Positions 1,205 through 59,282 of a stretch of DNA of 64,000 bases are shown piece by piece. The notes under the pieces were generated by a model. It ran no database searches, had not been told where the DNA came from, and saw nothing but the letters and a program-made list of their open reading frames with translations. Position 1 is the first letter of the stretch. Every line of letters starts with the position of its first letter. The translations under genes were made by a program, and so were the position numbers. The stretch is taken from IMG/VR virus record IMGVR_UViG_3300043436_004687, positions 248,001-312,000 of that record; one strand, written 5' to 3'.

Positions 1205-1918
1205 TCATATATTAACTAATTCATTCAATAAATCTTCATTATGAATGTTATATTTCTCTAAAAGGTTTTTTATTTTAAGTTTTTTAGTTGCTTCAGTCAA
1301 ATCTTTTGGGCAAAGTAATTTAAATTCTGTGCTTTTACTATTAAATAATTTCCTATATTTTGTATCAATAGCTTCCCAAAGTTCATTGTATTTAAATTCT
1401 TTAGAAAGTTTTATTATGTCACTCAAAACATAATTCATTGATTCATAATTATAAATTTTACCAGTTGATGCTATCTGTATTCCATAATCTAATATTCTTA
1501 GAGAATGGAATATTGATTTTAAACCAGCGTTCAAATCATAATCACCTAAAACAATTATTTTTTTCTTTCCCTTTACCCAGGAGTTTGAAGAAATTGTTGA
1601 AATGCTAGTTCTAAGTTTTGTTTTATCTAAATTAAAGTTAAAAAGTTTTATTTTATCTTTAACAATAATTATATCCTTGGCTTTTAAAAACAAACATTCT
1701 AGTGTTTGGATTTCATGAATATCAATTAAACTTTGAAATTGTTCAATTGTGTAGCAATGTATGTTAATGTCATGGGTTTCAAAATATTCTTTAGCAATAA
1801 TTATAAAATCTTCATCAGAATCTTCGTTAGCTGTGTTGTAAACAATCGAACCAAAACGATAAATACATCTTACATTGTCATCATCAATATATTTCTCAAT
1901 TAAAAAATTTTTAGTCAT
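1205..1918 (-). CDS. Pol-beta-superfamily nucleotidyltransferase
   Basis: YRFGSIVYNTANEDSDEDF (GS...DxD motif) followed by a helical C-terminal region. Confidence 0.75.
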   Translation of the reverse strand: MTKNFLIEKYIDDDNVRCIYRFGSIVYNTANEDSDEDFIIIAKEYFETHDINIHCYTIEQFQSLIDIHEIQTLECLFLKAKDIIIVKDKIKLFNFNLDKTKLRTSISTISSNSWVKGKKKIIVLGDYDLNAGLKSIFHSLRILDYGIQIASTGKIYNYESMNYVLSDIIKLSKEFKYNELWEAIDTKYRKLFNSKSTEFKLLCPKDLTEATKKLKIKNLLEKYNIHNEDLLNELVNI

Positions 1919-14740: not shown

Positions 14741-14900
14741 AAATTTCCTTGATTATCTGTGTGAACTACCCACCCCACCAAAGGCGATGAGATGGGCTTC
14801 TTGCACAACGCATAGCCTAATTGCTTACGTTATCGTACAAAGGGTTGTTCCTAACCCCAAAATTCTTTATGTTATATGCAGCGTTTAAATCTCTATCTAT
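14741..14900 (-). ncRNA. Predicted TnpB reRNA/omegaRNA (5' limit approximate); guide predicted from flank ACAGATAATCAAGGAAATTT
   Basis: Established TnpB architecture: the scaffold overlaps the tnpB 3' end and the right-end hairpin, and the guide is the flanking DNA. The 5' boundary cannot be determined by eye. Confidence 0.6.
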
Positions 14901-16000
14901 TGAATTACCACACTTATCACAATTGTAAGTTCTATCTGAAAGTTTTAAATCTTTCTTATGGTTTCCACAATTAGAACATATCTTACTGCTTGGTTTAAAC
15001 CTACCAATTACAACAAGATTTTTACCTTGCCACTCAGCCTTATATTCCAACATAGTCCTTAATTGCCTCCAACCCATTTCAGCTATTGCTTTAGCTAAAT
15101 TATGGTTCTTTACCATATTACTAACTGCTAAATCCTCTAATACAATTGTATCATACGTGTTTACTAATTCAGTAGATATTTTATGCAAATAGTCAGTCCT
15201 TTGGTTACGGATTTTCTCTTGCAGTAATGCCACTACTAATTTTTGTTTTTCTCTATTTTTTGAGCCTTTCCGTTTTCTTGCAAGGCTTCTCTGTTCAATT
15301 CTTAATCTTTTCTGTTGGGATTTAAAAAAGTTTTTATTTTCATATACTACACCATCAGAAGTAATTGCCAAATCTTTAATTCCAAAATCAACACCAATAG
15401 TTGTGCTTTCTTTAATTGGGGTTTTAATTGGGGTTTCATTATTAGTATCGACTAATAATGAAACAAAATATTTACCAGTTACGGTTTTAGTTAATGTAAC
15501 TCTTTTAGTTAATCCCTTAAAATTTCTATGATAATCAATAGCAACATCCTTTAACTTTGGTAATTTTAAAATGTTGTTATCAAAATCAACATCAAAACCT
15601 TGTGGAAATGTAATTGACTGTTTAGAATATCTATTCTTGTATTTAGGGAACTGACCTTTACCTTTAAAAAAGTTTTGATACGCTGTATCTAAATTGATAA
15701 TACTATGCTGTAAAACTTGACTTGGACATTCTTTAATATAATCAAACTCATTTCTTAATTCTGGAAGTTGTTTAATTAAATCATATTTAGATATTGATGT
15801 TTTATTTGAAGCATACGCAACAGTCTTGGTTTCTAAACCAAGATTATATACCAACCTATTCACACCAAAATACCTTTGTAATTGGTCTTTTTGGTCATCC
15901 GTTGGGAATATTCTATATTTGTATCCTTTAAGCATATATTATTAAATAATCTAAACTTTTGTAAAAGTACTATATTTTTATCTAAATTACAAGTTTTGGT
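14761..16000 (-). mobile_element. IS200/IS605-family non-autonomous (IS1341-like) element carrying only tnpB
   Basis: The right end reads GAAGCCCATCTCATC-GCCTTT-GGTGGGGTGGGTAGTTCAC (hairpin then TCAC, ending at 14761). Joining 16001 to 14760 restores a continuous frame (KGIILTDNQGNL). No tnpA is adjacent; ends are ambiguous by about 2 nt. Confidence 0.85.
14817..15935 (-). CDS. tnpB: TnpB RNA-guided endonuclease
   Basis: HTH start MLKGYKYRIFPT; RuvC motifs GVDFG, LEDL and DRDLNAA all present; zinc finger CSNCG...CDKCG. Confidence 0.95.
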   Translation of the reverse strand: MLKGYKYRIFPTDDQKDQLQRYFGVNRLVYNLGLETKTVAYASNKTSISKYDLIKQLPELRNEFDYIKECPSQVLQHSIINLDTAYQNFFKGKGQFPKYKNRYSKQSITFPQGFDVDFDNNILKLPKLKDVAIDYHRNFKGLTKRVTLTKTVTGKYFVSLLVDTNNETPIKTPIKESTTIGVDFGIKDLAITSDGVVYENKNFFKSQQKRLRIEQRSLARKRKGSKNREKQKLVVALLQEKIRNQRTDYLHKISTELVNTYDTIVLEDLAVSNMVKNHNLAKAIAEMGWRQLRTMLEYKAEWQGKNLVVIGRFKPSSKICSNCGNHKKDLKLSDRTYNCDKCGNSIDRDLNAAYNIKNFGVRNNPLYDNVSN

Positions 16001-22332: not shown

Positions 22333-25300
22333 TTATTTTATTAACCTCTGTCGTTTCAATTCATTTTCCACTTCTCGCCAATGAATTTTCATCTCTCTAA
22401 TTGTGGTCATATATTTTTGGGCATAAGCACCCATTGTTTCACTAGGAATTGGTCGTTTACTTGGTCTATCATCTGTATAATCATATTTTAATATACAATT
22501 CTTTTCATATTCTAATAATGCTTGAAATGCCCTTCTACTTTTCTCCCATGAAATATAACATTCCTCAGAACAAACTGGAACATCTACGGGCATACCCATA
22601 CACCCACAATCTCTTCCAGAACAACACAAGTGAACTTCGATTCCAATATTACAATTTAAACAATAACCCACATCCATTATTTTATATTTTCAAGAGGGTA
22701 AGCATTTAATATAGTACTTTTTACGACAATAGCATCACGTGTTCCATCAAAATCATCATAACTAACATTAGCTTTTGCTTTATTGGAAGCTTCTTTTAAT
22801 GCAGCTTTTACATGCATGGTAGCGAATTCTAACATCAATTGTTTATTAGATTTTTCTTTTCCATTAATTTGTCCACACCAATGTAAATCAATATACTTTT
22901 CTAAGGTAATAAACTTTTTAAAAGTATTGGGCATATCATCATATATTTTTGAGTAATGATTATAAATCAATTCATCTGCTGTTGGTAATTTATCCATAAT
23001 AATTAAATTTTTTTACTGAAAAATGTTCTTGATTTATATAACCAAATTGTTGTAATACATCTAAATCTAACTTCCTTTGTTTATAACCAAATAAACTAAT
23101 GTGGTCAACTTGATCTATAAAATCTTTTGTTTTGATATTCAAACTATGCATAGTTATTGATCTATTTGGGGGTAAAAGATGATACCATAAAGTATAGTGC
23201 TTTTCAAAATCCAATCTACTATTAATAATTACTTTATGAATTAATTCTGGTTGTGGACAACTATAATTCATTTCAACCATAGGGTAAGTACACCTATCAG
23301 TTTTCAAAATCTCATATTCTATTATATCTCTTTCATTTCTAGAGAATCCTACTAATAAAGTTAATAATGGTTTTTTAATCATCTATTCAAATTCTTTAGG
23401 ACTAATACGGTATAATTCACAAATCCTTTCCTTTGTTAACCAATGCATATCTTTTATTCCATATTTAGTAATATCACTATTGTGAATTAACCATTTTAAA
23501 ACTTTAGCCTTATTGTCTAACTCATCTAAGCATTCTTGAATTGAATTCATTCTCCTATGAGATTCAACCTGGAAAATCAATTCATTAATCTTATCTTGAT
23601 GTTTACGTTCTGCTTTTAATAATCTGGTATATTCTTTATACATATCTTCAGCACGAAATACTGACCAGTCAATTTTTGAATAAACATCTTCACCAACTAT
23701 TTGAAAACCATTGTAAAATCTACCCATTACATGTCTTAAATCTGGAATAAATATATAATCATCTTTATCATATCCCCATTCTTTAAGAAACCAATAATAA
23801 TCTTGTATTTTATTGCAAATTACCGCTGTTTTATATCTTTTCATAAATCACTAATTATTAAATTACAATCTAAACACTCGACTATCCAACCTTCAGTTTC
23901 CCCAAATTGATTATAATACTTAATTCTAGATTTTCTATGAGTATGTAAACATTTTTTTTGTTTGTTTAGCAATTTATCATTTTCTGCTTTAGTTTCTAAA
24001 ATATTAATTATTGAATCAAATGTTTCTTGGATGTCAAAATTATTAAATTTTATTTGATTAACATTTTCTGGACACACTTCCTTTATTTTAGAACAAACTT
24101 GAAGCAATAAATTCCAATCAGAGTCAAAATTTAATTTATTTTTTAATTCGCAAGGAAAACCACCAGTATAAATTAAAAAAATATCTTTAACACCTTCATC
24201 AAAAATTGGTGATTTACCACCATCTAGTTTTAATTCTTTTTTTGAAAAACATCTTATATTTGAATATAATCCACCACAATATGAATAATCTGCTTCATAA
24301 TCATAAACGTAATGATAACCTAAAAAATCTAATATTAAATCATCTTTATAATCCATTATATAAATTTATTAAAAAATTTGATTAATTTTTTATCTGTTTT
24401 AGTTACATTACTACAATGTAAAATATATTTTCTAGTTTTAAAATCAGCTTTTAAATAGTTAGAAACTAATTTATTTATATCGTCTTGTTCAACAATAGAT
24501 AAATTACTATCTATTTTAGTGCATTCATAATTACTTAAATTTACAACCTTTTTAACCTTTACATCTACTTCCATTACGCATTCCAAACTTTAAATTTATA
24601 TAATCCTGATTTTGTTTTTTTACAAGAAACATGAAACGGAGTGTAAACATCACTTTCAATTTTAATACCATTATTTTTCTTTGTTTCTTCTAGTTTAATT
24701 ATAACATCTTGAAAACCACTAAAATCGTTTTTTTCATATGTTTTTGTTGAATATTTATCAATGTAAATATTAACAGCTGATAATTGAGCAGCAATATTAG
24801 TATTTTCGTTTAATTCTATATGTATTTTCATATTTTTATTTATTTAAAATTACACCCATTCCATTACAATGTTCACATTCAATAAATGGTTTATTTATTT
24901 CTTCCATTAGCTCATTTAAATATAAATCAACTTTTTCTTCTAAATCTTTTTGGTTTAACCCATTGATTGGTTTCTGAGTTGGATAATCAGTATACCCTTC
25001 TGGTGATGTTTGAAATATTTTAATTGACCTTGAGTTACGATATCTGGTTTCGTTTCTAGGTCTTCTTTTAGTACCCATAACAACAGAATATGGTATAGGT
25101 TCGTGAGAAATTACTTTTTCAACGGTTAAACAAAAATCATAATCAGAAGTAATTCTAGCATATTTTGGATCTATATTTAATTTAATGTGGTTTCTTATTA
25201 TTTTATAAAATTCTTTCCCAGAAATTGAACAAGGTCTTTCCATATGCAAAGCTGGGTGTGTTGCTAATGCATTTAATAAACTAGGTGTACTAATGTATTT

Positions 25301-26862
25301 AGGTTTTTCAACATAAAAATTATCTTCTTCAGATAATAGTTCTATTTCAAAACTAACCTCTTCTAATTTACCCTCAATTGTGTCTGATTTTAAAACATAT
25401 AATCCCCTAATATCTGAATCATAATCCATTTCATTAGATGGAATTACTTTAGGTGTTAATTCACTTTCTGGGAAACCCTCTTTTAATTCATATCTAAGAT
25501 TAGTGGTTTGATCAGCACTTTTAGTTTCTACTTTTTTAGGTAAATCCTTTATCCACCAAATACAAAATTGCCATTTAAAAAAGAAAAGATAAAACGCTGG
25601 TGACCATTCTTGCCTAGGTGAATTAAATTTGTCCTTCCAACCTAAACCAAGTTTCTTATAAACTATCGGATAACCTATCTCTAAATAATAATGATTTCCT
25701 AGTAATTTGAAAATTATATTTTTAGTTGTTTTACCCATTGGTAAATTTTTAAATTTTTTAGCATTTCTTAAATGGTCATTAGGCAATTTATCTAAATCCT
25801 CTTGAGATGTTAATTCTAATTTTCTGAATGTTATAATACTTCCATTAAAACTTCTAGGGTAAAAATAAGGTGTTCCATGGGTAATTTCACCTAAATAATA
25901 TTTTTTTATTGGTAATTTAAAAACACCTTTAATTTCTCTTATTAATTTTTTTATTTTCATTATATGTTTGTATTTATCACATTTACATCCAAATAAAAAT
26001 CTGAAAATATGTGAATTGTGTAAATTATTCTATTATTTGGTTTACCTATACTTTTTTCAGTTTTAAAAATTCTCTCATCTGGTTTGGTTAAACAATCCTC
26101 TAAAGCTAAAATCATATCTTCAACTGGTTTAGCATCTTCAGTCCATGCCATTGCCATAATATCCATATCACTTGAAAGGCTACCATGCAAACCTAAAGCC
26201 CAACCACAATCTAATGCGGCTTTTCTAAAATCTTCCCACAAGCAAGCGTAAAATACAGCTCTACCATTTGTGATTACATGTTCTCTACTTTTCATAAATT
26301 AATTCAACTAATTGACCATCTTTCTTCACCCAATAATTATGGTTTTTTATTTTTATAATAAATCTAGTAGAAGCCTCAGTCCTTAAACTTAATTTATCAG
26401 ATATTAAAGGTATTTCAAATTCTTTAGTTTCTTTAATATTTCCAGTAGGATCAACCTTACATATTGTTGCTATCATTTAAGTAATTTTTCATAATTTTAT
26501 TAAAAATTTAATAAAATTATGAAAACTCGATTCTTCAATAATTTTATTACTCTCATTTAAATAAAAATTGGTTCTTATTGTAAAACTACTATTTGTAATG
26601 TTTTTACTTATTACTAGTAATTTATTTTCAATTCTAAGATTAATCATATCATTTAATTATTTTTATTTCTTAAAATATAAGGCAATCTTATTAAACTCCA
26701 AAATACTACCCATATGATAAAAGCATAATAATTATTTTCAACATATGTTAAATATTGTACAAACAATAGACTCCCAAAAATAAAAAATAAGAAGATTAAA
26801 TCTCTTTTTATGGCTGGGAGTTTATCATACCATTTATTTAATTTAAATAAATGTTTAGTCAT
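22333..26862 (-). other. Cluster of short hypothetical genes including the chimeric 24836-25960 ORF
   Basis: Densely packed co-oriented ORFs without recognised function. Confidence 0.65.
25960..26295 (-). CDS. Minimal nucleotidyltransferase-like protein
   Basis: LGLHGSLSSDMDIMAMAW resembles the GS...DxD motif. Confidence 0.5.
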   Translation of the reverse strand: MKSREHVITNGRAVFYACLWEDFRKAALDCGWALGLHGSLSSDMDIMAMAWTEDAKPVEDMILALEDCLTKPDERIFKTEKSIGKPNNRIIYTIHIFSDFYLDVNVINTNI

Positions 26863-27026: not shown

Positions 27027-28337
27027 CTAATTGTTTTCATCTTGATTATCTTCGATATTAGTAATCTCTTGCTCTTGTTCTTCAGATTCCATCAATAAGA
27101 ATTTTTTAGATTTTAATTTATATGCTTCATATTGTTCCAACCTATCGATTCTTAAAATAATCCCTTCTTCTGGAACTTTATTTTTACACATATAACAATT
27201 TTTCTCATTATAATCTTCTTCCAACTTAGATAAGAAATTCTCTCTCCAATGATTATTCAAATCTAAATGTGGGTACAAATCTTTAGCGTAACCATAATAC
27301 ATAAGGGTGTCTTTAAATAATAAACCCACTTTTTCACAAAATTCTTCAATTTGTTTTGTAGATAGGAAAATAACTTTACCATCTTCATTCACAACTGATA
27401 TTTTGTAAACGTAAAATTTGTGTTCTCCTGGTGAACAACCATAATCAAATTTTCCTTGTATAGGGCTTCCAGATGGTGTAAACCCAAGTATTTCACCATA
27501 TAATGTAAAACCTTTAGGGATTAAATGCCCAACCTCTTTAGCCACTACACCCCAAACATCCTCACCGTAAAAACCCTCGCCTTGAGTTGGATTTAAATAA
27601 CCATTTTTAATTACTTTTCTTGATGAATATACAATATCGAATTTAGTTTCATCTAATTTAACTTTAAATTTCTTCAATATTTTTTCAAACCAAGTTAATT
27701 CTCTTTTAACTTTAACATTTCCAATAACAATTGAGGTTCCATGTTTTTTATAAGAAATTTCAATTAAATCATTTGGATTTAATTTGTGGATTTCCTTTCT
27801 TAAATTTGAAGTATCGTTATGTAAATAGAATTGATTATCAACTAATCTACTAATTTTAACTGATTGTTGCCCCTTATTTTTAGAACTAGATTCTTTAATA
27901 GGTACAATATACTTTTCACAAATACTAATATTATCAATATCCGTAAATTGATCCCCCACTTTTAAAGAAGTAACATTAGTTACCAATGAAAATAAACTAT
28001 CTAAAGGCATTAGCATACCATTAGATATAACACCTCTTAATTTTAAAGCTTTTACACGCTTTTGTCTAAATGAAATAAAACCTTTTTTCTCAACATCTAA
28101 ATTTTCTTCTGGTTTATCATATAAATTATTATTTTTACAATAATCGGCTGATAATTTAGTTCCAGCAACAAAATATAACATAATAGAACCCACTTCAGTA
28201 GTTTTTGGTACTACAACATTATTCCCATCGACCACAACCCTACAAATTGCATCAGCGTTTTCAATATCAAATTTTTCTTTAATTTCAACTACTGAACAAG
28301 CATAGTTAGTTGATGATTCTTTAATAGTTAATTTCAT
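27027..28337 (-). CDS. ATP-dependent RNA ligase with an N-terminal OB/tRNA-binding-like domain
   Basis: Motif I KKHGTS, III YGEILG, IIIa FYVYKI, IV EEGIILR, V YKLKS; N-terminal VKALKLRGVISNGML. Confidence 0.85.
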   Translation of the reverse strand: MKLTIKESSTNYACSVVEIKEKFDIENADAICRVVVDGNNVVVPKTTEVGSIMLYFVAGTKLSADYCKNNNLYDKPEENLDVEKKGFISFRQKRVKALKLRGVISNGMLMPLDSLFSLVTNVTSLKVGDQFTDIDNISICEKYIVPIKESSSKNKGQQSVKISRLVDNQFYLHNDTSNLRKEIHKLNPNDLIEISYKKHGTSIVIGNVKVKRELTWFEKILKKFKVKLDETKFDIVYSSRKVIKNGYLNPTQGEGFYGEDVWGVVAKEVGHLIPKGFTLYGEILGFTPSGSPIQGKFDYGCSPGEHKFYVYKISVVNEDGKVIFLSTKQIEEFCEKVGLLFKDTLMYYGYAKDLYPHLDLNNHWRENFLSKLEEDYNEKNCYMCKNKVPEEGIILRIDRLEQYEAYKLKSKKFLLMESEEQEQEITNIEDNQDENN

Positions 28338-47940: not shown

Positions 47941-48383
47941 TTTGAATTGTGTTATTTGATTAATACACTACAAAGATATGAATTTATATCTTATAAAACA
48001 AACTTATTATGTTAAAGTTTTGAGTTATAATATTCAATAAATTTTTCAAGGGTTTTAAAATAACCTAATACAAACCCTTCGTCTTCGGACTCTTCAAAAC
48101 CATCAAATTTGGGTGCATCTAATTCGGGAGCGCACATTTGATAACGTTCCATAATTTGGGTTAATAAGCTTGTTTCTCTCGAAATTAAAGCGCCTATTTC
48201 CTTACGATTAAATATAATTGATTGGTAGTATTCTCGACCTCTGCCAGTCGAATTTGGTTCACTAAAAGTAATTTGATTTGTGTTTGTGATTCTCATAATG
48301 TTTGTTGATTAATACATAGCAAAGATATAACTTTATATTTAGATATACAAATAAAAAGTGAATTATTTTCAAATATGCGTTAT

Positions 48384-48460
48384 AAAAAAATATAAGGTAG
48401 GTTGGAGTCTACTCTTCCACCTTGTTAGGGTACGCCCTTTGGGAGTTTTGCTCTACCAAC
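48384..48460 (-). ncRNA. Small RNA family, copy A
   Basis: TACCTTTG (48465-72) then GTTGGTAGAGCAAAACTCCCAAAGGGCGTACCCTAACAAGGTGGAAGA-GTAGACTCC-AACCTACCTTATA-T7. Confidence 0.7.
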
Positions 48461-48480
48461 ACTACAAAGGTATGAATAAA

Positions 48481-48596
48481 GATCCATATATGCAAATAAA
48501 AAGTGTTAAATTTTTACAAATAAAAAACCCTATTCACTCTGAAGTTTGGAATAGGGTTTTTAAAAACAAATGTTAGTATTAATCAGATAAAACATT
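48481..48596. repeat. 116-bp perfect direct repeat, copy 1 (copy 2 at 50892-51007)
   Basis: Base-by-base identity from gatccatatatgc to gataaaacatt; includes a terminator hairpin and the -33 region of the sRNA promoter. Confidence 0.9.
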
Positions 48597-50810
48597 TTTC
48601 TTTTTAGGGTTCAATAAACTATCTATAAATTTATTGAATGTATTTCTTTTGTAGGGTTTGTAATTTATTTCGGTATTGAATAAGGCTTTAAATTTATTCA
48701 ATTGGTACTGAATACCCGATTTTTGCAATTTGATAGGATTTTCTTTTTTCAATCTATTTTTGAATGAAATTGAAAATCTTTTTAGGTCGTAATAGCTAGG
48801 AATTATTTGAATGTTTAAAATTCTCAAGCTATATAATTTATAATCGTTTCTAAATGATTTCATATATTAATAATTGTATGAATTAATAAATTTTACACAA
48901 GCGTTATAAGTCGCATTTATTTTTGATTCATTAAAAGAAAATGAACCACTTTGTATAAATAATTCTCTTTCGTCATTTGGTTCAATTACACAACTATAAT
49001 TTTCTATGTTAACACTATATCCTAAACTTTCAATCTTTTCAACTACTTTCATTAACCAATTCCAGTCAGTATGATATTTAGAATATTTTGCAATACCTTG
49101 AATTACTTTCTCAATATCGTTTTCTCTTATTGAGAAAAAAGGCATATCTGAAAAACTATAAACTCCATCTAATTCACATTTAGGTTTTAAACCAACAAAT
49201 TCGTTTATAATTCTATTATTTTCTTCAATAGTTGGAACAATGTTTAAACTTTCCTTTGCTCTTTCAAGGGTGTTAAAATCTCCGCTTTCAAAGTTTTCCC
49301 CATTTTCAAAGATTCGTGTAAAGAATTTTTTACCTTCTTTAACTACTTGCATATTGTTTTTTTCAAAAACTACTTCTTGTGTGTTCATAATGTTTTTTTG
49401 TTATCTTGATTAATACACTACAAAGATATAACTTTATTTTTTAATATGCAAATTTATTTATTAAAAAATTGTATAATACAACCATTTTGATTAATATTGT
49501 AATTTTGGTTTAATATGGTTGTGTTATTGCTTTTGATTAGTATTGAATTCGTACTAGGTGTATTGTTAGTTATTTTTACTTCAAAATAACCTCTTTTTAA
49601 TAAGGAAACATTTATATTCCTTTGAGTTGTTTTCAATAGTGTATCGGGTGTAATTCCGTTATAATCAATTAAGATTAAACTGCTATTGGTTGCACCTTGC
49701 CAATTGATTTGGTTTTGTGTAAATTCGGCTTTCGGTGGTTCGTTTTTAATGTTAACATTTTCGTTATCAGCTGTACAACTTGCCAATAGAAAGATTAACG
49801 AAAATGCAACTAATTTCATTATCGACAAAGTAAAGAATAATTTTTTCATAATATGTATTTTTAATGGTTAATACCTCAACAAAGATATAAATTAATATTT
49901 TAATATGCAAACTATTTTAGATAATTTTTTTCATAAATATCAAATTGTCCTACAATTGATAATAAGCCGTTTTCATCATTTAAAGTATCTTTGGTAATGA
50001 TTTTACCATCCTTTGATTGATATTGAGTCAAAACGCCTTTAAATTGCTTTATATAATCTATTTCGTTTTCAAATAACCATAAATCATATTCGGGGTTTGT
50101 TGGGTGTTGTAATTCGGTTTTAAATCTATATCCGTGTTGAGTATATTTAACCTCAACAATTAGAGTAGATTTTCCGTTGTATTGTGGATAATGACAATTT
50201 TTAATAACTACCCTTTCATTTTTATAATCGTATGGTGTCATATTATTTTGTTATTGGGGTGTAAATGTTGCTATTCATTGCAATTCTGTGAGTTTCTTGT
50301 GTTGCGTGGTCAAAAAATTGTAAGTAACCATTATGTTTATTACTTAACAATTGACAATTTTTATAGGTTGTTGGTGGAAAACCATAACTAGGGTTTATAT
50401 CTTGTGTTACATCAGCAAAATAGGGCATGAATTTATTGTTAACATCAATTGCATCCTTTGGTGGGTTGCTTGAATATTCCCACAATCTTGATTGAAATGC
50501 TAATTTGCCATTAGTATCAAAAAATTTACCATCCTTTTCAAATATGTTTGGCATTGGTTCTTTTGTATATAATACTTGACCAATTAAATCGAATTTTACT
50601 ATTTTGAATACCATAATTATATTTGAATTAAGGTTAAAACTATTAATGATAAGAATGTAAGCAAAGCAATGTTTACTTTAGTTTGAATTTCTTTTGATGC
50701 TTTTTTAGTTGTTGCCATCGTTATAATAATGTTTGTTGATTAATACACTACAAAGATATAAAATAATATTTACTTATCCTAATAAAATGTGTTAAAATTT
50801 TCAACCTTAT

Positions 50811-50871
50811 AAAAAAAATATAAGGTTGGTTGGAGTCTACGTCTCAACTTTTCTCGTTTGCTTTGTATTAC
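50811..50871 (-). ncRNA. Small RNA family, copy B
   Basis: TACCTTTA (50876-83) then GTAATACAAAGCAAACGAGAAAAGTTGAGAC-GTAGACTCC-AACCAACCTTATA-T8. Confidence 0.65.
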
Positions 50872-51011
50872 TATGTAAAGGTACAACAAAGGATCCATAT
50901 ATGCAAATAAAAAGTGTTAAATTTTTACAAATAAAAAACCCTATTCACTCTGAAGTTTGGAATAGGGTTTTTAAAAACAAATGTTAGTATTAATCAGATA
51001 AAACATTCGAT

Positions 51012-51368
51012 TTTAAAAATAGGGAATAGTTTTCTCACCCTATTATGATTGAAACTTTAATATCATCCGACAATGGCGCACATATTGGCAAATCGGAATT
51101 AAATCAATCTTTGACAAAACCACCTATCTAGTTTTTATCTTCTCTTTGAGCCGTGTGAAATCAGTTAATATAAAACGGCATTTGATAGGAATTTAAAATA
51201 AACCATTGTGTTAAGTTGCGTACACTACTACTTGCAATATTAATAAGATTTTAAACACTTGTAATCCTAGTCTTCTTTATGGTTTATTATTTTTTAAAAT
51301 GAAAGGTAAGTCTTGATGTCTTACGTTAATTCGTTTTATGATGGCTTGCTTACAACCCTCTCATTTCT
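51012..51368 (-). ncRNA. Candidate ~355-nt structured non-coding RNA of unrecognised class
   Basis: Own TACCTTTG promoter (51373-80) and terminator (51015-44); I found no sizeable ORF on the transcribed strand; four nested-helix domains identified by eye. Confidence 0.7.
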
Positions 51369-52610
51369 TTTACAAAGGTAATTCTTTTATTTTAAACTAC
51401 CAAATATTTTTTGTTAAATTTTCAATAAAGTTTTACATTCTAAACCAAATGAATTGTTTATAAAAACCTCTTTCATTTGATATTTTCTACCATTCTTTAA
51501 TTGGAATTTATCCAATGCGTCTTGACTTTTAAATTCTTTTATGAATGTCATATTAAATAAATTTTCGTATGTTGTCAGCCTCTTTTTTATATTCAGAAGT
51601 TTTGATTTTATATTCTGAACATACGTCTTCTAAAATTGTCAAAGCCAACAAAGAATTATGTTTTAAGAATTCGCTATCTGAACCAATAGCACCGCTATTT
51701 AAAGCACGTTCTAATTTCTTGAATGCGTTTTCTTCAATATCTTTTAACATTTGTTTTACTCTTACTTTGGAGTATCTTAATGCAGTTTTTTTAGTATTGT
51801 CCATAATGTATTTTGATTAATATTTCTTTAGCAAAGATATGAATTAATATTTAAACTACCAAATAAAAAATGTTAAAGTTTTCTATAATCAAAATTAATA
51901 AGGGAATTGCCTCTTGCTCTCTTTTGAATCATTGGTAAAAATCCAGCACTAAAATAAGGATATTGCCTTTCTAATTCTTTGAATTTTTTTGTACGTCTAT
52001 CTAACTTTTCAATTACAATATGTACCTTTAATTCAAAATAATCAAATATGTTAACATTCAAATCAGCAATTTCCTGGCTTTCAAACATTGTACTATTGCA
52101 TTGTCTATTGGTAAGATTTTCTTTTGCGTTAAGCATAATAAATGTATCTCTACCTATCTGAACTAAACTAAATACTTTTTTCATTTTGTTTTTATTTATT
52201 TGATTAATACACTACAAAGATATGAATTTATATTTTAATATCCTAACAAATTATGATAAACTTTTAGCGCAAAAGCTTTCTTTTACATCTTCAAAGTTTC
52301 TTTCAATTAATTCTATAGTTACATTTAAAATATAACGTTCATCCGTTTCTTTGTTTCCACATCTTAACCAAGTTGAAACATTTTCAGCATCAATCGCAAC
52401 TATAAATAAATCCCAATTAATACCACTACTAAATGTAATTTGTAATCTATATTTATGTGCTTTTTTCATTTTGTTTTTTATTATCTTGATTAATACACTA
52501 CAAAGATATGAATTAATATCTTATAAAACAAATAAATTATCATTTATTTTTATTTGAAATTTTAACACTTTTTATTTGGTGGTTTAAAATATATTTTGTA
52601 CCTTTGTTAT

Positions 52611-52690
52611 GTTGAAAGATACAAACAAAGAAAGTAATGAAAATTATTGATACGTAGACTCCGTCACACCCATATATGAAATATTTTTTT
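52611..52690 (+). ncRNA. Small RNA family, copy C (divergent 3' end)
   Basis: TACCTTTG (52599-606); AGTAAT-GAAA-ATTATT hairpin; GTAGACTCC at 52654; terminator 52699-730. Confidence 0.6.
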
Positions 52691-54193
52691 AAAAGCATAA
52701 AAAATCCGTATTATAATAATACGGATTTTTAAATATAATTTAGTATGTAAAATTTCTCGTTCTACCTAAAAGAGTATAACGGCTTTTATCGCCTAAATAA
52801 GTCAATTGTACATTAACAACCATTCTTACAATATCCTCAAAACTTCCACTAGTAAAAGAAACATCTTTCAAACTACCAATTGAAAATTTAACCTTGATAG
52901 TTAACACTTCGCAATATTCGGTTTTAGTTGCTTTGATTGTATATTTTACATTCAATTCTTTTAAATAGTCTTTAACGTTTCCATTGTACTGAAGTGTTTT
53001 ACTTCCCATATTCCACCAATGGATTAATAAATTTGACTTTAAAATTCTTTCTATTTCTCTTTTGTTGTATGGTTCCATAATATTTTTATGTTATTTGATT
53101 AATACACTACAAAGATATAAAATAATATTTACATACGCAAATAAAAATGCAAAAAAAAATCCATTATTTTCATAATGGATTTTTAGACGTTTTAAGCAAC
53201 GTTATTAGATTTAATGACTACTAACTCTAAATGGTTGGAAATCTTTAACCTCAAAGCTTTTAATTGCATCCACATCCAATTTAACTTCATTGAATAAATT
53301 CAATGTTGGATTGTTTGCACCCTCAACCATTTTTTTAACGCTTGCATCATACAAAGGAATCAAGTCTTCAACCTTAGCACCGCAATAGATAACATTTGCT
53401 TTCATATCTAGCTTAGACATTGCAATATATGTAACATACAAATATTTAATTTCATCTTGACTAAACAAATCGAAATTTTCAGCTAAAAAATCACTTGCTC
53501 GGTTTAATTCTTTTGCACCATTCAAAGAAAATGCAGTAGTTTTAATATGATTGTTTTCATCATAGAATCTAACTAAAAATTGAGAATAGGTAGATTTTTT
53601 AGGTTTGTTTTTTAATCCAGTTTTTGGATTGATAGTTTGCGTTACGTGACGATAACCCTTCTTTTTATCGAATTCAATTGAATCAAACAAAGTAGTTCTA
53701 GCTGTGTAACCATAAGGATAATTTTCTACTTCTACTACTTCTGATGTTGGGATAAATTTTCTCATTTTGTTTTATGTTATTTGATTAATACACTACAAAG
53801 ATATAAATTAATATTTACTTATGCAAATTTATTTTGAATTAATTTTGATATTTGAATGAATAAAATAATTGTTATTATCTTTCAATCTCAATTTTCTCAA
53901 TTTCATAATACAAATATTTGGAATATCTGAAATGTGGATAATTTTATAATGATTGTTATTAATTCGTTTTAATAATAAAGTAGGGTTTGGATTAAATATT
54001 TCATTAATTGAATTGAAAGAACCATTTGGAATACCTACAAAAATATGTGAATTTTTAAATTTTCTCATTTGAATTATGTTCTTGATTAATACACTACAAA
54101 GATATAAAATAAAATGTTACAATCCTAATAAAAAAATGAATTATTTTTTATTTAAAATTTGTGTATATGGATTTTTATTTGTACCTTTGTAGT

Positions 54194-54272
54194 GTTGGTA
54201 GTGAAAACTGAAACGGGTTACTAATCAAAAATTAGTCAGAGGGTGGACTCCGACCTACCTTATATTTTTTTT
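54194..54272 (+). ncRNA. Small RNA family, copy D
   Basis: TACCTTTG (54182-89); AGT-GAAA-ACT and ACTAAT-CAAAA-ATTAGT hairpins; GTGGACTCC-GACCTACCTTATA-T8; terminator 54290-322. Confidence 0.7.
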
Positions 54273-55611
54273 AAAAAAAACTGAAGACAAAAAAACCATA
54301 TAAATTTCTTATATGGTTTTTTAATTTATTATTTTCGATCTCTATTTTATTAAGTATATATTATTTATAGTTACCTATTCGGGTGGTGCTTTATTTCTAT
54401 CCATCTTTAAATTATTAATCAGCGTTCAAAACTTCTAAATTGTAACCAATGTTTTCTAATTCGTTAAACAAATCTTTGTATTGTTCTTTGGTTGCATCCT
54501 TGCAATTGTTTTTGATAAAATCAGAATGACAAATTGAGTGTTGCCCTAAATTAGCATAACAATCAAATCCATTATCTTTATTTGGCATTTCTGGGAATAC
54601 TGCCAAAACCTCGCTAAATGGTTGTTCATCCAATTCACTTGGTGTATATGTAGCAATGTAAAATTGTACTTTGGTAATTTCTGTATCTTTTTTCATTTTG
54701 TTTTTATTTATTTGATTAATACACTACAAAGATATGAATTTATATTTTAATATCCTAATAAAATATCAATTATTTTCTAAAACCATTTAAAAGTTCATCT
54801 AGTAAAATATAACCTACTCCGATAAATGGTAAACCGCTATTTGGTTCGTAGTTATAATTGTATTGTAGTCTAATTTGCAATTCATTATTTTTATCTAATA
54901 AGAAATTTTGAAATCTACTAAATCCAGTAATTGATTTTTTAAGAATTTCGTTTACTTCTTTATCAGCTTTTTTTTCTTCATCTGTAAAATCACTTCTTTT
55001 TATTCCTTCATAACCTTTATTTTGAAGTGTTAATGATGGAAAATTTTTATAAATTTCTAATAAAGTTGAATGTTGCTCCTTAGTTAATAAATTGATTTTC
55101 ATAATGATTTTATTTATCTTGATTAATACACTACAAAGATATAAATTAATATTTAGATATACAAATTTATTTTACTTTATTTTCACTATATAATTTTTTC
55201 GCTTTATATTGATAACTACCAAAAGAAACAATATGTTTTTCTACTAAATTATGAATAGTTGCATTATTACTTTCACAAGCTTTTGACAACCTACCTATAA
55301 AAACCTTATAAGTTAAAGCACCATTATTAAAATCCTCAATTGATTTTCTTGCTTTCCAATAGTTTTGATTTTCAGTAGTTCCGTGATTTTCATTTGGAAA
55401 AAATCTACTAGTTACTTCCGTAGCCACCTTATTGAAAAAATCTTCTGTTGTATGTATCATAATATTTTATTTATCTTGATTAATATGATACAAAGATATA
55501 AAATAATATTTTAATATTCTAATAAAATATGTTAAAATTTAATCATAAAATATTTTAAAAATAATTGTATTTTTATTTGGTAGTTTAAAATAATTGTCGT
55601 ACCTTTGTAGT

Positions 55612-55691
55612 GTTGGTGGTGATAACCGAAACAGGCTCCTACAATTCTTTTGCGGGCGGAGGGTGGACTCCGACCTACCTTATATTTTTTT
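55612..55691 (+). ncRNA. Small RNA family, copy E
   Basis: TACCTTTG (55600-07); GGT-GATA-ACC hairpin; GTGGACTCC-GACCTACCTTATA-T7; terminator 55709-739. Confidence 0.7.
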
Positions 55692-57516
55692 AAAAAAAAA
55701 GATATAAAAAAATTCCATATATTAACTATATGGAATTTTCAAAACCAAACCAAAACCTATTTAACCAATCTTAAAAAATCATCCAATTTACTACCACATC
55801 TTAAAGTAATTTTTTCGTAAACATGACCATTGTCCCCAATCTCAAAAAAGTATTCAACGTCTTCAGTTCTCAAGCTACCCTTTTTACCACCTTTAACGCT
55901 ATTGTGAACCTCTAAACCAGTGTTTTGTATTCTAGTTAAAAACGCATTTGTTTTTTCATCAATTTCGTTTTGTTCAATGTTTTTTAAAACCTCAACCGCT
56001 TGCAAATAACTTAACCAATCATCCATTTTTTTAATGGTTGGTTTACCTACTTTGTTAGGCATAACTAAATCGTGCTTTATATCAGTTTTTGAACCATTAA
56101 GTAAAGAAAACTCGAAACTAGTTTCGTTGTAACGCTTAAATGGTCTTAACAAAATACCTTTAAACTCAACATATACATCAATAATATCGTGGTAATTTTT
56201 TATTTGTTCAATATCATTTTTAACATCTAAATAAGGAATAATTTTTACAATCCCTTCAAAGTGTTTTAAACTATCTAATTTTTCTTTTAAATATTTTTCA
56301 CTATATTCAGTTAAAATGTAACCTTCTTTTTTTGCTTGCTCTAATGTAATTTGATTTTTCATAATTAAATAATGTTTGTTGATTAATACATAGCAAAGAT
56401 ATAAATTAATATTTACATATACAAATAAAATATGTTAAAATTTCAAATTAATCTATACCCCAACCACATTCGTCATACTCATTACTATTTTTGCAAATAT
56501 AACAAGCAATTACATTAATAATTTCATTTAAAAATAACATAGCATTTTCTTCTAATTCTGTCAAATTTCTAATATCAGTTATATGCTCAACTTCAATTTG
56601 ATAATCTAAACATTGTAATTGTTTAAATAAATTAATTGGACTCAATTTAAAAATAGGAGTTTTTTCAAAAACTTGTAAATTTTCCTTTGCAATTTCAGCA
56701 TCTAAAACACCCTCGTAATGATGCTTATATTGAAGTGTAACTGCCAATACATTAATTTTTCTTAACTCATCAACAATCAAATCAATTTCATTTTGCCAAT
56801 CATTTTTTTTGTTGACAATGTTTTCAAATTTTTCTTTCAATTCATAAGGCAAATAAAAATTAGATTTTGAAATTAATACTTTCAATGATTCAGCAATTGA
56901 ATTAAAATGTTTCGGACTGCAAATGTAACTAGACATAATATTTTATTTTTATTGATTAATACCTTACAAAGATATAAAATAATATCTTAATAAACAAACT
57001 TTAAATGTTAAATTTTTGAAATTTCACTTGGACTTAATCTAACATCTTTTTTACAATCAGTAGTACCATATACAAACGAACCTCTTTTCATTGGATATGG
57101 TGGAAATGATTTAATAACAAATTCAGTACCCATTGCAATTTTTTCTTTATAGTCAAAACTCTCTACTAAAGTTTTACATCTATCTCCAACTTTAAAACCT
57201 TTATAACTTAACATAATTTAATCGTTTAAATGTTCAAATACATCGTTGGTACTCATTCCCATAGTACGAGGAAAATTAATATATTGTAAGTCATTATTTT
57301 CATCAATATAACTAAATATATCGTTAACCTCATTACTTCTCACAAATTGAATATTACTTGCTTTCATTTTTTTATCTTTATTGATTAATACACTACAAAG
57401 ATATAAATAAAATTCCATATAAACAAATAAATTAATATCTTTTTTACAATAAAAATAATTTGAAATTTTAACACTTTTTATTTGTATATTCAAAAAACAA
57501 TTTGTACCTTTGTAGT

Positions 57517-57591
57517 GTTGGTAGAGAATATCCCAAAAGAAAGTAATGAAAATTATTGATACGTAGACTCCAACCTACCTTATATTTTTTT
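57517..57591 (+). ncRNA. Small RNA family, copy F
   Basis: TACCTTTG (57505-12); 5' part like copy A, middle identical to copy C; GTAGACTCC-AACCTACCTTATA-T7; terminator 57606-634. Confidence 0.7.
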
Positions 57592-58068
57592 ATAAAGATA
57601 TAAAAAAATATTCCATACATTATATGGAATATTTAAAAACATATTAATTAATATATTAATTCTTTTATAAATTTAAAATCCTTATCAAATTTAACTAACT
57701 TTTCTTTATTGGTTAAACTATTGATAATACCACAATCTAAAGTATAAGAGTTTTTATTTTTGTAAACTCTTGCCTTATGTAAAAATATCTTTGTTTTAGA
57801 TAATAAACTATCTAAAGCATAATATCTATTTTTTTCTAAATAGATATGAACATAACCCAATTTTTGCAATCCCTCTTTACTATTATTAGCTTGTACCAAA
57901 ATAGTGTTTTCTAAATTTGTGAAATACATAATATTTTACTTTATCGATTAATACACTACAAAGATATAAAATAATATCTTATAAAACAAATAAAAATCAA
58001 TAAAAAATAAATTAAAAATAATTGCATTTTTATTTGCATATCTAAAATTTTATTCGTACCTTTGTTAT

Positions 58069-58130
58069 ATACAAAGCAAGGGAGCAAACCTGAGAAGTAG
58101 ACTCCACCCTACAATAAACTCAACTTATTT
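58069..58130 (+). ncRNA. Small RNA family, copy G
   Basis: TACCTTTG (58057-64); ATACAAAGCAAGGGAGCAAACCTGAGAA-GTAGACTCC; colinear with copy B; no clear U-tract. Confidence 0.6.
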
Positions 58131-58306
58131 ATAACAAGTCTAAATTATAAAAATTTAACAAAATAAATTTGCATATCTAAAAAACAATTCATACCTTTGC
58201 ATTTGACTGAATAGTGTACACTCACCCAAAAATGTAGTGTACACCCAACTCATACAACCATATCACAAAAGTACCCTCTAATGCGGTACAACACAACTAT
58301 GAAGTA

Positions 58307-58618
58307 ATGCCAAACATAAAAAAACTAAAAGAAGCATACAACAAAGCAAGCCAATCAAAAATTGGTGATAAAACAATATGCCCTTCTTGTAACAACTCAT
58401 TCGAGAAAAAAACATATAACCAAATATTCTGTAAAGCAAAACCAAATACAACTTGTAAAGACTATTACTGGAATAACATAACACCCAATAAAAGAAATAA
58501 CAAAACTAGAATATCACCAGCTTCCAAAAGATTCATGGCTAATAATATATTATATAATATATTTAACCCCGATGACTATGAACACCCCTTCAGCTCCGAT
58601 GCTCTAGGACAAGACTAA
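58307..58618 (+). CDS. Cys-rich (zinc-finger-like) hypothetical protein
   Basis: CPSC...FC...C pattern; preceded by a TACCTTTG promoter near 58192 and a ~105-nt leader. Confidence 0.65.
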   Translation: MPNIKKLKEAYNKASQSKIGDKTICPSCNNSFEKKTYNQIFCKAKPNTTCKDYYWNNITPNKRNNKTRISPASKRFMANNILYNIFNPDDYEHPFSSDALGQD

Positions 58619-58772: not shown

Positions 58773-59282
58773 ATGGGTAGAAATATGGAAGTTAGAAAAA
58801 AATATTTAGAAGCTAATAAAGAAAAAATAAAAGAACAAAAGAAAATTCGTTATGAAGCTAATAAAGAAAAAATAAAAGAATATCAAAAAAATTATCGTAT
58901 AAATAATAAAGAAAAAATAAATAATTATTATAAACGAAAAAGAAGTGAGGATGAATTGTATAAATTAAAAGGAAATACAAGAAATTTAGTCAAAAATTCA
59001 CTTAAAGGTTTTTTTAAAAACATATATAGAACAGAAGAAATCTTAGGTTGTACACTAGAAGATTTTAAATTACACTTAGAATCAAAATTCGAATCATGGA
59101 TGAATTGGGGTAATTATGGTATCTGTAATGGTGAATTAAATTATGGATGGGATATTGACCATGTTATACCAATATCGAGTGCTAAAACATTAGATGACGT
59201 ATATCGTTTAAATCATTATACTAACCTACAACCATTATGTAGTTATACTAATAGATATATAAAAAGGGATAGCTACACATAA
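58773..59282 (+). CDS. HNH-type endonuclease, paralogue of 2849-3553
   Basis: EANKEKIKE repeats, then ILGCTLEDFKLHLESKFESWMNW...WDIDHVIPISSAKT...NLQPLCSYTNR. Confidence 0.8.
   Translation: MGRNMEVRKKYLEANKEKIKEQKKIRYEANKEKIKEYQKNYRINNKEKINNYYKRKRSEDELYKLKGNTRNLVKNSLKGFFKNIYRTEEILGCTLEDFKLHLESKFESWMNWGNYGICNGELNYGWDIDHVIPISSAKTLDDVYRLNHYTNLQPLCSYTNRYIKRDSYT

Follow-up and report, generated by a model that had tools for sequence, protein, structure and literature searches.

Organization of the seven units

Seven short non-coding units, each behind its own predicted promoter, are dispersed in the analysed part of a jumbo Bacteroidota phage genome (a stretch of 64 kb, here called the window). 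The nonamer GTRGACTCC that they share occurs in the window exactly 7 times, at 48404-48412(-), 50832-50840(-), 52654, 54243, 55663, 57563 and 58097(+), while 0.07 occurrences are expected from shuffled sequences, none of which (0/100) reached 7, and allowing one mismatch adds only 2 chance-level sites. Each nonamer lies 32-53 nt downstream of a promoter of the form TTTG-N20-TACCTTT(G/A); in six units this is TTTG-N20-TACCTTTG of exact geometry, and in unit B the -7 element is TACCTTTA. The units, with RNA ends inferred from consensus only, are as follows.

48384..48496 (-): unit A, promoter (-33 TTTG at 48493-48496, -7 TACCTTTG at 48465-48472) and RNA from about 48458 to 48384; core GUAGACUCC at 48404-48412; a long form with 5' UGGUAG, a small hairpin GAG/CUC, GGG, P1 with loop CUAACAA, core, tail CUACCUUAUA and U7; covariance-model hit 48391-48439, 77.1 bits.
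50811..50907 (-): unit B, promoter with -7 TACCTTTA (50876-50883) and RNA from about 50869 to 50811; core at 50832-50840; a degenerate member with no GGG, whose tail CAACCUUAUA pairs with downstream UAUAAGGUUG; model hit 50819-50858, 16.7 bits, E 0.0067.
52575..52690 (+): unit C, promoter 52575-52606 and RNA about 52613-52690; core at 52654-52662; deviant tail GUCACACCC; shares a 36-nt middle with F; followed by a strong bidirectional terminator hairpin at 52700-52730; not found by the model.
54158..54272 (+): unit D, promoter 54158-54189 and RNA about 54196-54272; core GUGGACUCC at 54243-54251; P1 is ACUAAU/AUUAGU and P2 is AGGGUGG/CUACCUU followed by U8; a further hairpin at about 54296-54316; model hit 27.7 bits; terminator-like by scan.
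55576..55691 (+): unit E, promoter 55576-55607 and RNA about 55614-55691; core GUGGACUCC at 55663-55671; the predicted lowest-energy fold is a four-way junction closed by 5' GGUGGU with the tail ACC.UACC; model hit 24.5 bits; terminator-like by scan.
57481..57591 (+): unit F, promoter 57481-57512 and RNA about 57519-57591; core at 57563-57571; 5' end and tail as in A, middle as in C, GAA in place of GGG; model hit 21.4 bits.
58033..58130 (+): unit G, promoter 58033-58064 and RNA from about 58071, with an unclear 3' end; core at 58097-58105; tail CCCUACAAUAAA, still giving GUAG:CUAC; model hit 58078-58118, 21.4 bits.

The observation made in the earlier note, that seven promoter-associated units share this core, is thus confirmed. 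Units A, B, D, E and F continue RACC(T/A)ACCTTATA plus a T-run, while C and G have other tails. The middle hairpins that the note had named exist and correspond to P0 (D/E) and P1 (B/G, C/F/D) of a family-wide architecture. The mosaic nature of F, which shares its 5' end and tail with A and its middle with C, and the location of C to G on the plus strand against minus-strand genes were found as the note had described. Several details, however, require correction. The units had been regarded as free of open reading frames, but short ORFs (43-72 aa) lie over six of the seven; none of them is conserved, so they look spurious. Only the P2 hairpins of D and E pass a terminator scan, while the remaining units have a 4-bp GUAG:CUAC hairpin plus a U-run or rely on downstream hairpins, so that the 3' ends are uncertain. 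The 5' GUUGGURG, which had been proposed to close on the core, can pair with CCRAC but also with the tail CUACC, and it is the tail pairing that has some covariation support. The seven RNAs are not thermodynamically unusual, as their folding energies do not fall below those of shuffled sequences (z from -0.78 to +0.65), and the covariance model of the family recovers 6 of 7 units (E <= 0.007), with C being missed because of its tail.

Family distribution and predicted structure

The units belong to a large RNA family. Successive pattern scans detected it in 27, 49 and 80 viral stretches, representing about 84 distinct IMG/VR contigs (4-353 kb, many of them jumbo), and the covariance model gives 120 hits at E < 0.01 in 0.9 Mb of viral DNA from these contigs. 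Four unannotated copies are present in the cultured lytic Tenacibaculum phage Larrie. Phage fragments commonly carry 4-7 copies; for instance, the viral fragments L002, L010 and L019 carry six, five and five, respectively. Promoters occur in nearly all family members, and the orientation relative to a promoter is constant in all copies. The family is found almost only in phage DNA. A search of 185,579 species genomes with the tail-containing 17-mer GACTCCRACCTACCTTA, rather than with the bare 15-nt core, returned 12 unrelated chance hits and only one true member, on a phage-like MAG contig with phage-type genes. The core was not found in 636 kb of Bacteroidota rRNA-operon contigs, in contrast to 140 hits in 912 kb of viral loci.

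No known RNA family was recognized. A search of Rfam 15 gave 0 hits in the window at the gathering threshold, and at E <= 10 over 48300-58300 it gave 5 weak hits, none of them on a unit, CRISPR-DR models included, and none to a tRNA or tmRNA model. ARAGORN found no tRNA or tmRNA gene, and no tandem array covers any unit, the units being 0.5-2.4 kb apart.

The predicted architecture comprises optional variable 5' hairpin(s), a short GGG, a variable hairpin P1, a near-invariant 15-nt core, AG(R)GUAGACUCC(R)AC, and a tail that pairs back (GUAG:CURC or UAGAC:GUCUA), followed by a U-rich sequence. All 5 pairs of P1 show compensatory changes, with 116 double-change cells against 32.5 +/- 6 in shuffles (0/500), and the covariation score is 0.304 against 0.165, falling to at most 0.038 when the partner is slid; G.U pairs are numerous. 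These features speak for RNA-level selection on the sense strand. These P1 counts come from an alignment fitted to the model. The upper stem of P2 is 97.6% paired, but the changes are only wobble-type and one-sided, so that the conclusion on a helix supported by compensatory substitutions applies to P1 only. The core and its RAC extension are near-invariant, while the tail changes but stays complementary to GUAG or UAGAC, and the same core is kept behind two unrelated promoter types. As the family was found through its core, the invariance of the latter is partly a matter of ascertainment.

The genomic neighbourhood is of accessory and anti-defence character, with Gad1, RNA ligase and methylase genes in the window, and DUF932, SprT-like and GP88 genes at other loci. 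No neighbour gene is universal, the best being that of a roughly 100-aa protein in 25 of 86 contig groups. A possible lead is a DUF932-family gene, which sits next to the RNA in 14 of its 16 occurrences. The window promoters have identical geometry to those of about 20 neighbouring genes, and the phage genes use no Shine-Dalgarno sequence.

Interpretation

The interpretation offered in the earlier note is partly supported. A diversifying family of separately promoted small phage RNAs with a constant element and a variable body, without an Rfam match and with family-wide covariation in one helix (P1), is supported by our results, and promoters of the same type and geometry as those of neighbouring small genes fit co-expression, although early expression remains an inference. 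The picture of a constant scaffold with a variable guide is not supported, since the constant part is a 15-nt sequence rather than a scaffold, and the variable part consists of structural hairpins of diverse sequence that are not spacer-like. The proposed mimicry of CRISPR repeats or of type III antitoxins is not supported either. The decoy idea of the note remains possible and is our leading reading, although without direct evidence.

We consider these units to be genes for a phage-specific family of small non-coding RNAs of roughly 50-100 nt, each copy being its own transcription unit driven by a host-type (Bacteroidota sigma-A) promoter of the same kind as those of the neighbouring small accessory genes. 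In this view, the 5' hairpins (P0, P1) are dispensable and fast-evolving, and the tail folds back on the GUAG(AC), placing the CUCC-containing part of the core in or next to an 8-nt loop, just before the U-rich 3' end. The core would be a sequence-specific recognition element acting in trans, and several strongly promoted copies would serve dosage, so that the RNAs bind a conserved factor stoichiometrically as a decoy or sponge. That factor would most likely be a host component common to Bacteroidota, or else a widely shared phage protein, and binding would occur while the accessory and anti-defence genes are expressed. Our analysis demonstrates the family, its copy number, its restriction to phage DNA, the promoters, the P1 covariation and the core invariance, whereas transcription itself and its timing, the RNA ends, action in trans and the nature of the partner are inferred, no partner having been identified. 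The structural setting of the core differs between members (an 8-nt loop, a stem around a GUAG tetraloop, or a four-way junction), which argues against a single protein-binding fold. The scarcity of terminator-like P2 hairpins and the unexceptional folding energies also count against this reading, which we regard as tentative, with a probability of about 0.45.

A bolder possibility, which is not excluded but which we consider unlikely, is that the family represents a new class of phage counter-defence or host-takeover RNA, in which the core, made from many strong promoters, would titrate one highly conserved Bacteroidota factor: a sequence-specific defence ribonuclease, a tRNA- or rRNA-handling enzyme, or the ribosome itself. 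In some phages it may work together with the adjacent DUF932-family protein.

Phage-encoded regulatory RNAs are barely known outside Proteobacteria, and RNA biology in Bacteroidota, which lack Hfq and CsrA, is only now being opened up. The apparent abundance of this family, with at least 120 copies in about 84 viral contigs, many of them from jumbo phages, its near-restriction to phage DNA, and the retention of a 15-nt element that has not drifted across very different phages and two promoter systems, imply a strongly conserved interaction partner. The presence of the family in a cultured, strictly lytic phage with a cultured, non-pathogenic host (Larrie on T. larymnensis LAR25) makes its function directly testable. 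Should it be a decoy for a defence or housekeeping factor, it would add a new type of RNA-based phage weapon and a marker for accessory regions in Bacteroidota phages.

Alternative explanations

The strongest alternative, although an unlikely one, is that the RNAs are antisense (seed) regulators, in which the invariant GUAGACUCC(R)AC base-pairs with a conserved RNA, as in sibling sRNAs. Its target could be a host mRNA, tRNA or rRNA, or the antisense transcript that would be made from the convergent promoter seen in some phages: a TTTG-N20-TACCTTTG promoter faces the 3' end of the RNA in loci of the L004 and L011 types. A conserved short sequence with variable surroundings is the signature of sibling sRNA seeds, and the RNAs are weakly structured and A-rich. 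The best complement in Bacteroidota rRNA operons is 16S helix 42 (11 bp including one G.U), and both the R=A and R=G forms have matching natural 16S variants. However, this match is only marginal against shuffled cores (p about 0.03, uncorrected) and lies in a paired helix, no complementary site beyond chance occurs in the window, and the phage genes have no GGAG-type ribosome-binding sites to mask. Moreover, the CUC of the core is predicted to be paired about 60% of the time, and 15 invariant bases is long for a seed.

It is less likely that the units are cis-acting transcription elements, that is, promoter-proximal RNA signals followed by a weak terminator, acting as attenuators, antitermination (nut/put-like) sites, insulators or primers for replication rather than as diffusible RNAs. 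The units sit immediately after promoters, P2 plus the U-run is a weak terminator in most copies, 5' segments that can compete with P2 for the tail covary with it, and A and B point the same way as the downstream genes. On the other hand, C to F point against the local genes and run into bidirectional terminators, the downstream genes have their own promoters, the core is kept behind two unrelated promoter types, and no downstream gene is shared.

Similarly doubtful is the possibility that these are tRNA-derived or tRNA-mimicking RNAs, resembling a T-arm or acceptor end, which would decoy a tRNA-targeting enzyme or defence nuclease or be processed by RNase P at the GGG. The size and multicopy layout resemble phage tRNA clusters, long forms are predicted to fold into four-way junctions, GACUCCGA is identical to part of the T-arm of a Flavobacteriia-type tRNA-Ala, and an RNA ligase gene lies in the window. 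Also, GGGGCUGA and a possible GGG:UCC pairing with a G.U at the third pair recall tRNA-Ala and tmRNA ends. Besides the negative ARAGORN and Rfam results, only 11 of 95 P1 loops have an anticodon-loop form, there is no T-loop or D-loop consensus, flanking bases on inspection do not covary with a GGG:CUCC helix, and most members are short forms with no closing stem.

A mobile or recombining DNA cassette (promoter plus repeat), conserved at the DNA level and not a functional RNA, is improbable. About 125 nt upstream of A and B is identical, F is a mosaic of A and C, and many loci lie at contig ends, but the compensatory changes in P1 include G.U pairs that work only on one strand, the orientation relative to a promoter is constant, and the core is kept across about 84 otherwise unrelated contigs whose flanks are unalignable.

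The weakest explanation, an RNA anti-CRISPR (repeat mimic) or type III antitoxin mimic, to which the small size, separate promoters, multiple copies, anti-defence neighbourhood and, in some copies, 5' GUUG might point, is largely refuted by the lack of CRISPR-DR hits on any unit, of the 17-mer in the species genomes apart from the hits mentioned above, and of a tandem array, as well as by the occurrence of the same core in phages of apparently different Bacteroidota hosts, whereas repeats differ between hosts.

Comparison with known systems

RNA anti-CRISPRs (Racrs) are likewise small, promoter-driven phage RNAs, sometimes in several copies, that act as decoys, but they copy host CRISPR repeats, while the core described here matches no CRISPR-DR model and, in the 17-mer search, no host genome. 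Type III antitoxin RNAs and phage pseudo-ToxI offer a precedent for a phage RNA that could neutralise a host RNA-binding toxin; those, however, are tandem repeats of about 36 nt processed by the toxin, while the present units are dispersed and each has a promoter. Phage tRNA gene clusters and tRNA-like RNAs are similar in size, in multicopy clustering in accessory regions, in the four-way junction folds predicted for some copies and in the T-arm-like GACUCCGA, but T-, D- and anticodon-loop signatures are absent here. Sibling sRNAs with C-rich loop motifs (LhrC, Qrr) are paralogous sRNAs that carry several near-identical functional motifs, with a CU-rich motif in or near the terminator loop, but they mask Shine-Dalgarno sites, which neither this phage nor, as a rule, Bacteroidota mRNAs use.

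The FopS/GibS multicopy sRNA family of Bacteroides (PMC11697453) also comprises many paralogous RNAs, of about 65-70 nt, each with its own canonical Bacteroidota promoter, in which a short conserved sequence is combined with a 3' hairpin and for which dosage through multiple loci has been proposed. No sequence or model similarity to it was found in the Rfam searches, assuming that the FopS model, stated in that paper to have been deposited, is in Rfam 15. FopS is chromosomal and host-encoded, whereas the family described here is found in phage DNA, and the FopS seed (R1) is single-stranded at the 5' end, whereas here the constant part is at the 3' hairpin.

Promoter-linked units of the window

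The earlier note, which described seven small promoter-linked units (A to G) sharing the 9-mer GTRGACTCC, is correct in its observation, and the family to which these units belong proved to be larger than it had recognised. The 9-mer occurs exactly seven times in the 64-kb window, once in each of the units, while dinucleotide-preserving shuffles give a mean of 0.07 and none of 100 shuffles reaches seven. Allowing one mismatch adds only two chance-level sites elsewhere. All seven units can be aligned from a -33 TTTG, through a 20-nt spacer and a -7 box TACCTTT(G/A), to the 9-mer. A scan for TTTG-N17-23-TANNTTTG found 35 sites against 8.9 expected, and about 27 of them, located between 44 and 63 kb, have the exact 32-nt geometry (TTTG-N20-TAnnTTTG). 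Each small minus-strand gene of this region has its own TATCTTTG promoter and a conserved, shared leader (UAGUGUAUUAAUCAA...AUG), while the RNA units use TACCTTTG. This arrangement is the Bacteroidota promoter consensus. It is also described as the canonical sigma-ABfr promoter (PMC11697453).

Units A, B, D, E, and F continue with RACC(U/A)ACCUUAUA and a U-run, whereas C and G do not. Unit F combines the 5' end and tail of A with a 36-nt middle identical to that of C, and units C to G lie on the plus strand among minus-strand genes. Three points of the initial description require correction. The units had been described as ORF-free, but short mechanical ORFs, which are not conserved, overlap six of them. 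Only the 3' hairpins of D and E pass a terminator scan. Finally, none of the seven RNAs folds better than its shuffles (z from -0.78 to +0.65).

Other features in the immediate surroundings of the units are as follows:
Window about 48473-48597 and about 50892-51016: an identical block of about 125 nt upstream of units A and B, containing the promoter and a bidirectional terminator hairpin; it points to recent duplication or gene conversion, and both copies receive the same weak Rfam hit.
Window 51283-51404, minus strand: another TACCTTTG promoter of the right geometry, followed by a predicted ORF-free transcript (51283-51366) that ends in GUAAG/CUUAC plus CUUUCAUUUU (z = -1.97).
Window 58168-58306, plus strand: a TACCTTTG promoter followed by a leader with a direct repeat, TAGTGTACAC(T/C)CA(C/A)CC twice, ahead of the ORF at 58307-58618.

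The second of these was considered as a possible eighth copy ("H"), as its hairpin and 3' end resemble the family layout. However, it lacks the core and gets no hit with the covariance model described below, and hence we do not count it as a member. It may be a separate small RNA.

Distribution of the family

The window belongs to IMG/VR contig 3300043436_004687 (339,635 bp). Three pattern scans of viral contigs returned 27, 49, and 80 stretches, which together make about 84 distinct contigs of 4 to 353 kb, many of them above 200 kb. As the MAFFT alignments mis-registered the variable hairpin P1, consensus folding based on them was abandoned in favour of a covariance model built from a gapless six-sequence seed. 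The model finds 120 copies at E < 0.01 in 0.9 Mb of these loci, 95 of them distinct, and six of the seven units in the window. The presence of several copies per phage is common: among the retrieved viral loci (designated here by L numbers), L002 carries six copies, L010 and L019 five each, and L011 four.

A megablast search of the 10-kb region against 50,697 phage records found nothing, while a sensitive blastn search of these records found a single cultured carrier, Tenacibaculum phage Larrie (ON950054, Cbastvirus; our locus L063), with four copies in unannotated intergenic DNA (at about 16.9-19.5 kb). Its laboratory host is T. larymnensis LAR25. The published description of this phage reports a strictly lytic siphovirus with no tRNAs and does not mention these RNAs. 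Two of the Larrie copies (L063 4159, plus strand, and 4219, minus strand) are convergent, and their 3' tails overlap and are complementary. A 1.1-kb stretch of L063 with no annotated gene (6420-7560, corresponding to about 19.2-20.4 kb of the phage genome) contains one RNA copy, several TACCTTTG and TATCTTTG promoters, and a block of about 75 nt repeated twice.

In one genome for each of 185,579 species, the conserved 17-mer, a pattern that contains the tail and is not the bare core AGRGTAGACTCCRAC, gave 13 hits. Twelve of them lack every other family feature. The thirteenth, on a Lentimicrobium MAG contig, carries two copies next to phage-type genes, including those of PHROG 1617 and of PHROG 1221, the family that is also hit by the DUF932-like protein of locus L004. 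The 15-nt core is absent from 636 kb of Bacteroidota rRNA-operon contigs but occurs 140 times in 912 kb of viral loci.

A literature search for the motif letters returned only an unrelated paper, and searches for work on phage or Bacteroidota sRNAs found no description of this family.

Predicted RNA architecture

The inspection of about 150 copies indicates a common layout: a promoter, optional variable 5' hairpin(s) (P0), an A-rich linker, GGG (C/U), a variable hairpin (P1), 1-3 nt, the core AG(R)GUAGACUCC(R)AC, a tail, and U-rich sequence. The transcripts are predicted to be 47-101 nt long, with a mean of 68. While the invariance of the 9-mer itself is imposed by our search, the flanking positions are also nearly fixed, namely -3 A, -2 G, and +9 to +11 RAC (82-99%). 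The loop of the 3' hairpin P2 is ACUCCAAC in 67 and ACUCCGAC in 23 of the 95 distinct copies. The tail, in contrast, varies. About three quarters of the tails read CURC..., which gives GUAG:CURC with an 8-nt loop, and about 15% read ACGUC..., which gives UAGAC:GUCUA, again with an 8-nt loop. Thus, the 3' strand changes while staying complementary to the invariant 5' strand.

Covariation was counted on the model-fitted alignment of the 95 distinct sequences. All five P1 pairs show changes on both sides, with 116 double-change cells against 32.5 +/- 6.0 in shuffles (0/500), and the covariation score is 0.304 against 0.165, and at most 0.038 when partners are slid. The upper P2 stem is 97.6% paired, but with only wobble-compatible one-sided changes. 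The frequent G.U pairs place the selection on the promoter-sense strand. No flanking covariation of the GGG with CUCC, CCU, or the R position was seen by inspection; a pseudoknot is geometrically possible, with both of its sides invariant.

In a minority of copies (12 long forms were found, including window units A, D, E, and F), a 5' GGUAG, GGUGG, or UAGGU can pair with the tail and close a four-way junction. Upstream words complementary to the tail track its A/G variant: UA-type words occur in 10 of 31 CUACC copies and 0 of 17 CUGCC copies (p = 0.009), and CG-type words in 4 of 17 CUGCC copies and 1 of 31 CUACC copies (p = 0.047), although these p-values are optimistic, since the phages are related.

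Four Lentimicrobium-type loci (L009, L021, L027, and L034), and by eye also L042, use a different promoter, TGTAAC(C)-N17-CGTATAA(T/A), which recurs before both the genes and the RNA in these phages. The RNA copies of those four also have an extra 3' hairpin followed by UCUAAAUAA, yet they keep the same core.

Comparison with described RNA classes and search for targets

No Rfam family matched the units at gathering or at E <= 10, no CRISPR-DR model hit a unit, no tRNA or tmRNA was found, and no tandem arrays were detected. The possibility that the CUCC motif of the loop acts as an anti-Shine-Dalgarno mask was rejected for the genes of this phage, as they have A/T-rich leaders with no GGAG and use no Shine-Dalgarno sequence. 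Complements of the core within the window occur only at chance level apart from the genes themselves.

Among the Bacteroidota rRNA operons that we retrieved, the best complement to the core is 16S helix 42 (11 bp with one G.U). It beats only about 97% of shuffled cores (p about 0.03) and lies in a paired helix, and therefore we consider it no more than a weak lead. The resemblance to the 16S 3' end (GGGGCU...ACAAGG...) holds only for a minority of P1 loops, 17 of 95 of which contain ACAA. A Flavobacteriia-type tRNA-Ala shares GACUCCGA in its T-arm, but the anticodon-loop form fits only 11 of 95 P1 loops, and anticodon-loop mimicry was rejected.

Genomic context

The predicted gene content of the window outside the RNA region includes the following features:
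Window 1205-1918, minus strand: an MNT-type nucleotidyltransferase.
Window 14817-15935, minus strand: a TnpB/IS605 OrfB-type gene (OrfB_IS605, Cas12f1-like TNB and HTH domains) inside the phage.
Window 24836-25960, minus strand: a strong homologue of the Gabija anti-defence protein Gad1 (Pfam PF25705, E 3.7e-75).
Window 27027-28337, minus strand: an RNA ligase with a PHA02142 OB-fold domain.

A DNA methylase is also encoded in the window. The RNA ligase and the nucleotidyltransferase represent possible RNA-repair or toxin-antitoxin-related functions. The genes between the RNA units have no annotated function: no Pfam family reaches its curated cut-off, and the only PHROG hits are to function-unknown families, plus weak endonuclease hits for the ORF at 58773-59282.

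Across the loci, no neighbour gene is universal, but two neighbours recur. An unannotated protein of about 100 aa is encoded within a few hundred bases of the RNA in 25 of 86 contig groups (L041 1894-2175, L045 6130-6441, and 23 others). These are mostly phages with the CUGC-type tail, and the window lacks this gene. The predicted structure of this protein is good (pLDDT 84), but it has no Pfam or PHROG match and no fold match at E < 0.2. The DUF932-family genes are more striking, as 14 of their 16 occurrences lie 128-573 nt from an RNA core (L004 1806-2693, L006 1149-2114, L027 1623-2513, L034 5364-6281, and others), in both convergent and co-directional arrangements and behind both promoter types. 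By comparison, 14% of other large ORFs lie that close (binomial p about 1e-10, not corrected for shared ancestry). The predicted structure of the DUF932-like protein (pLDDT 79) gave no PDB sequence or fold match of value, and no functional literature was found. In several phages (L004 2760-2800; L011 11230-11275), a TTTG-N20-TACCTTTG promoter on the opposite strand faces the 3' end of the RNA gene, just after a convergent DUF932-family gene, and would produce an antisense transcript across the RNA.

Possible mode of action

Results of our analysis demonstrate a conserved family of promoter-linked units found in phage DNA and present in several copies per phage, RNA-level selection on P1, and an invariant 15-nt core held near a small 3' hairpin. 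That the units are transcribed by the host polymerase together with the accessory genes, that the core is a sequence-specific recognition element acting in trans, and that the copy number serves dosage are inferences. As the core is recognisable in different structural settings and the RNAs are otherwise weakly structured, recognition of the sequence by a protein or a nucleic acid seems more likely than recognition of a shape.

We tentatively favour stoichiometric binding of a conserved factor, as a decoy or sponge (probability of about 0.45), over the action of the core as a classical antisense seed, which we consider possible but doubtful. The 15 invariant bases, the high dosage, and the anti-defence setting fit titration better, and no target was found, although the evidence does not decide between these two readings. 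Cis-acting roles, tRNA mimicry, and a purely DNA-level repeat are less likely, as is CRISPR or antitoxin mimicry. The interpretation offered in the earlier note is partly supported: a family of phage small RNAs is borne out, while its suggestions of CRISPR-repeat and antitoxin mimicry are not supported and should be dropped.

The occurrence of the family in a cultured phage makes its function testable. Small RNAs of phages and of Bacteroidota are already known, and what is new here is a sibling-sRNA-like family that is carried by phages and is unrelated to any curated RNA family.
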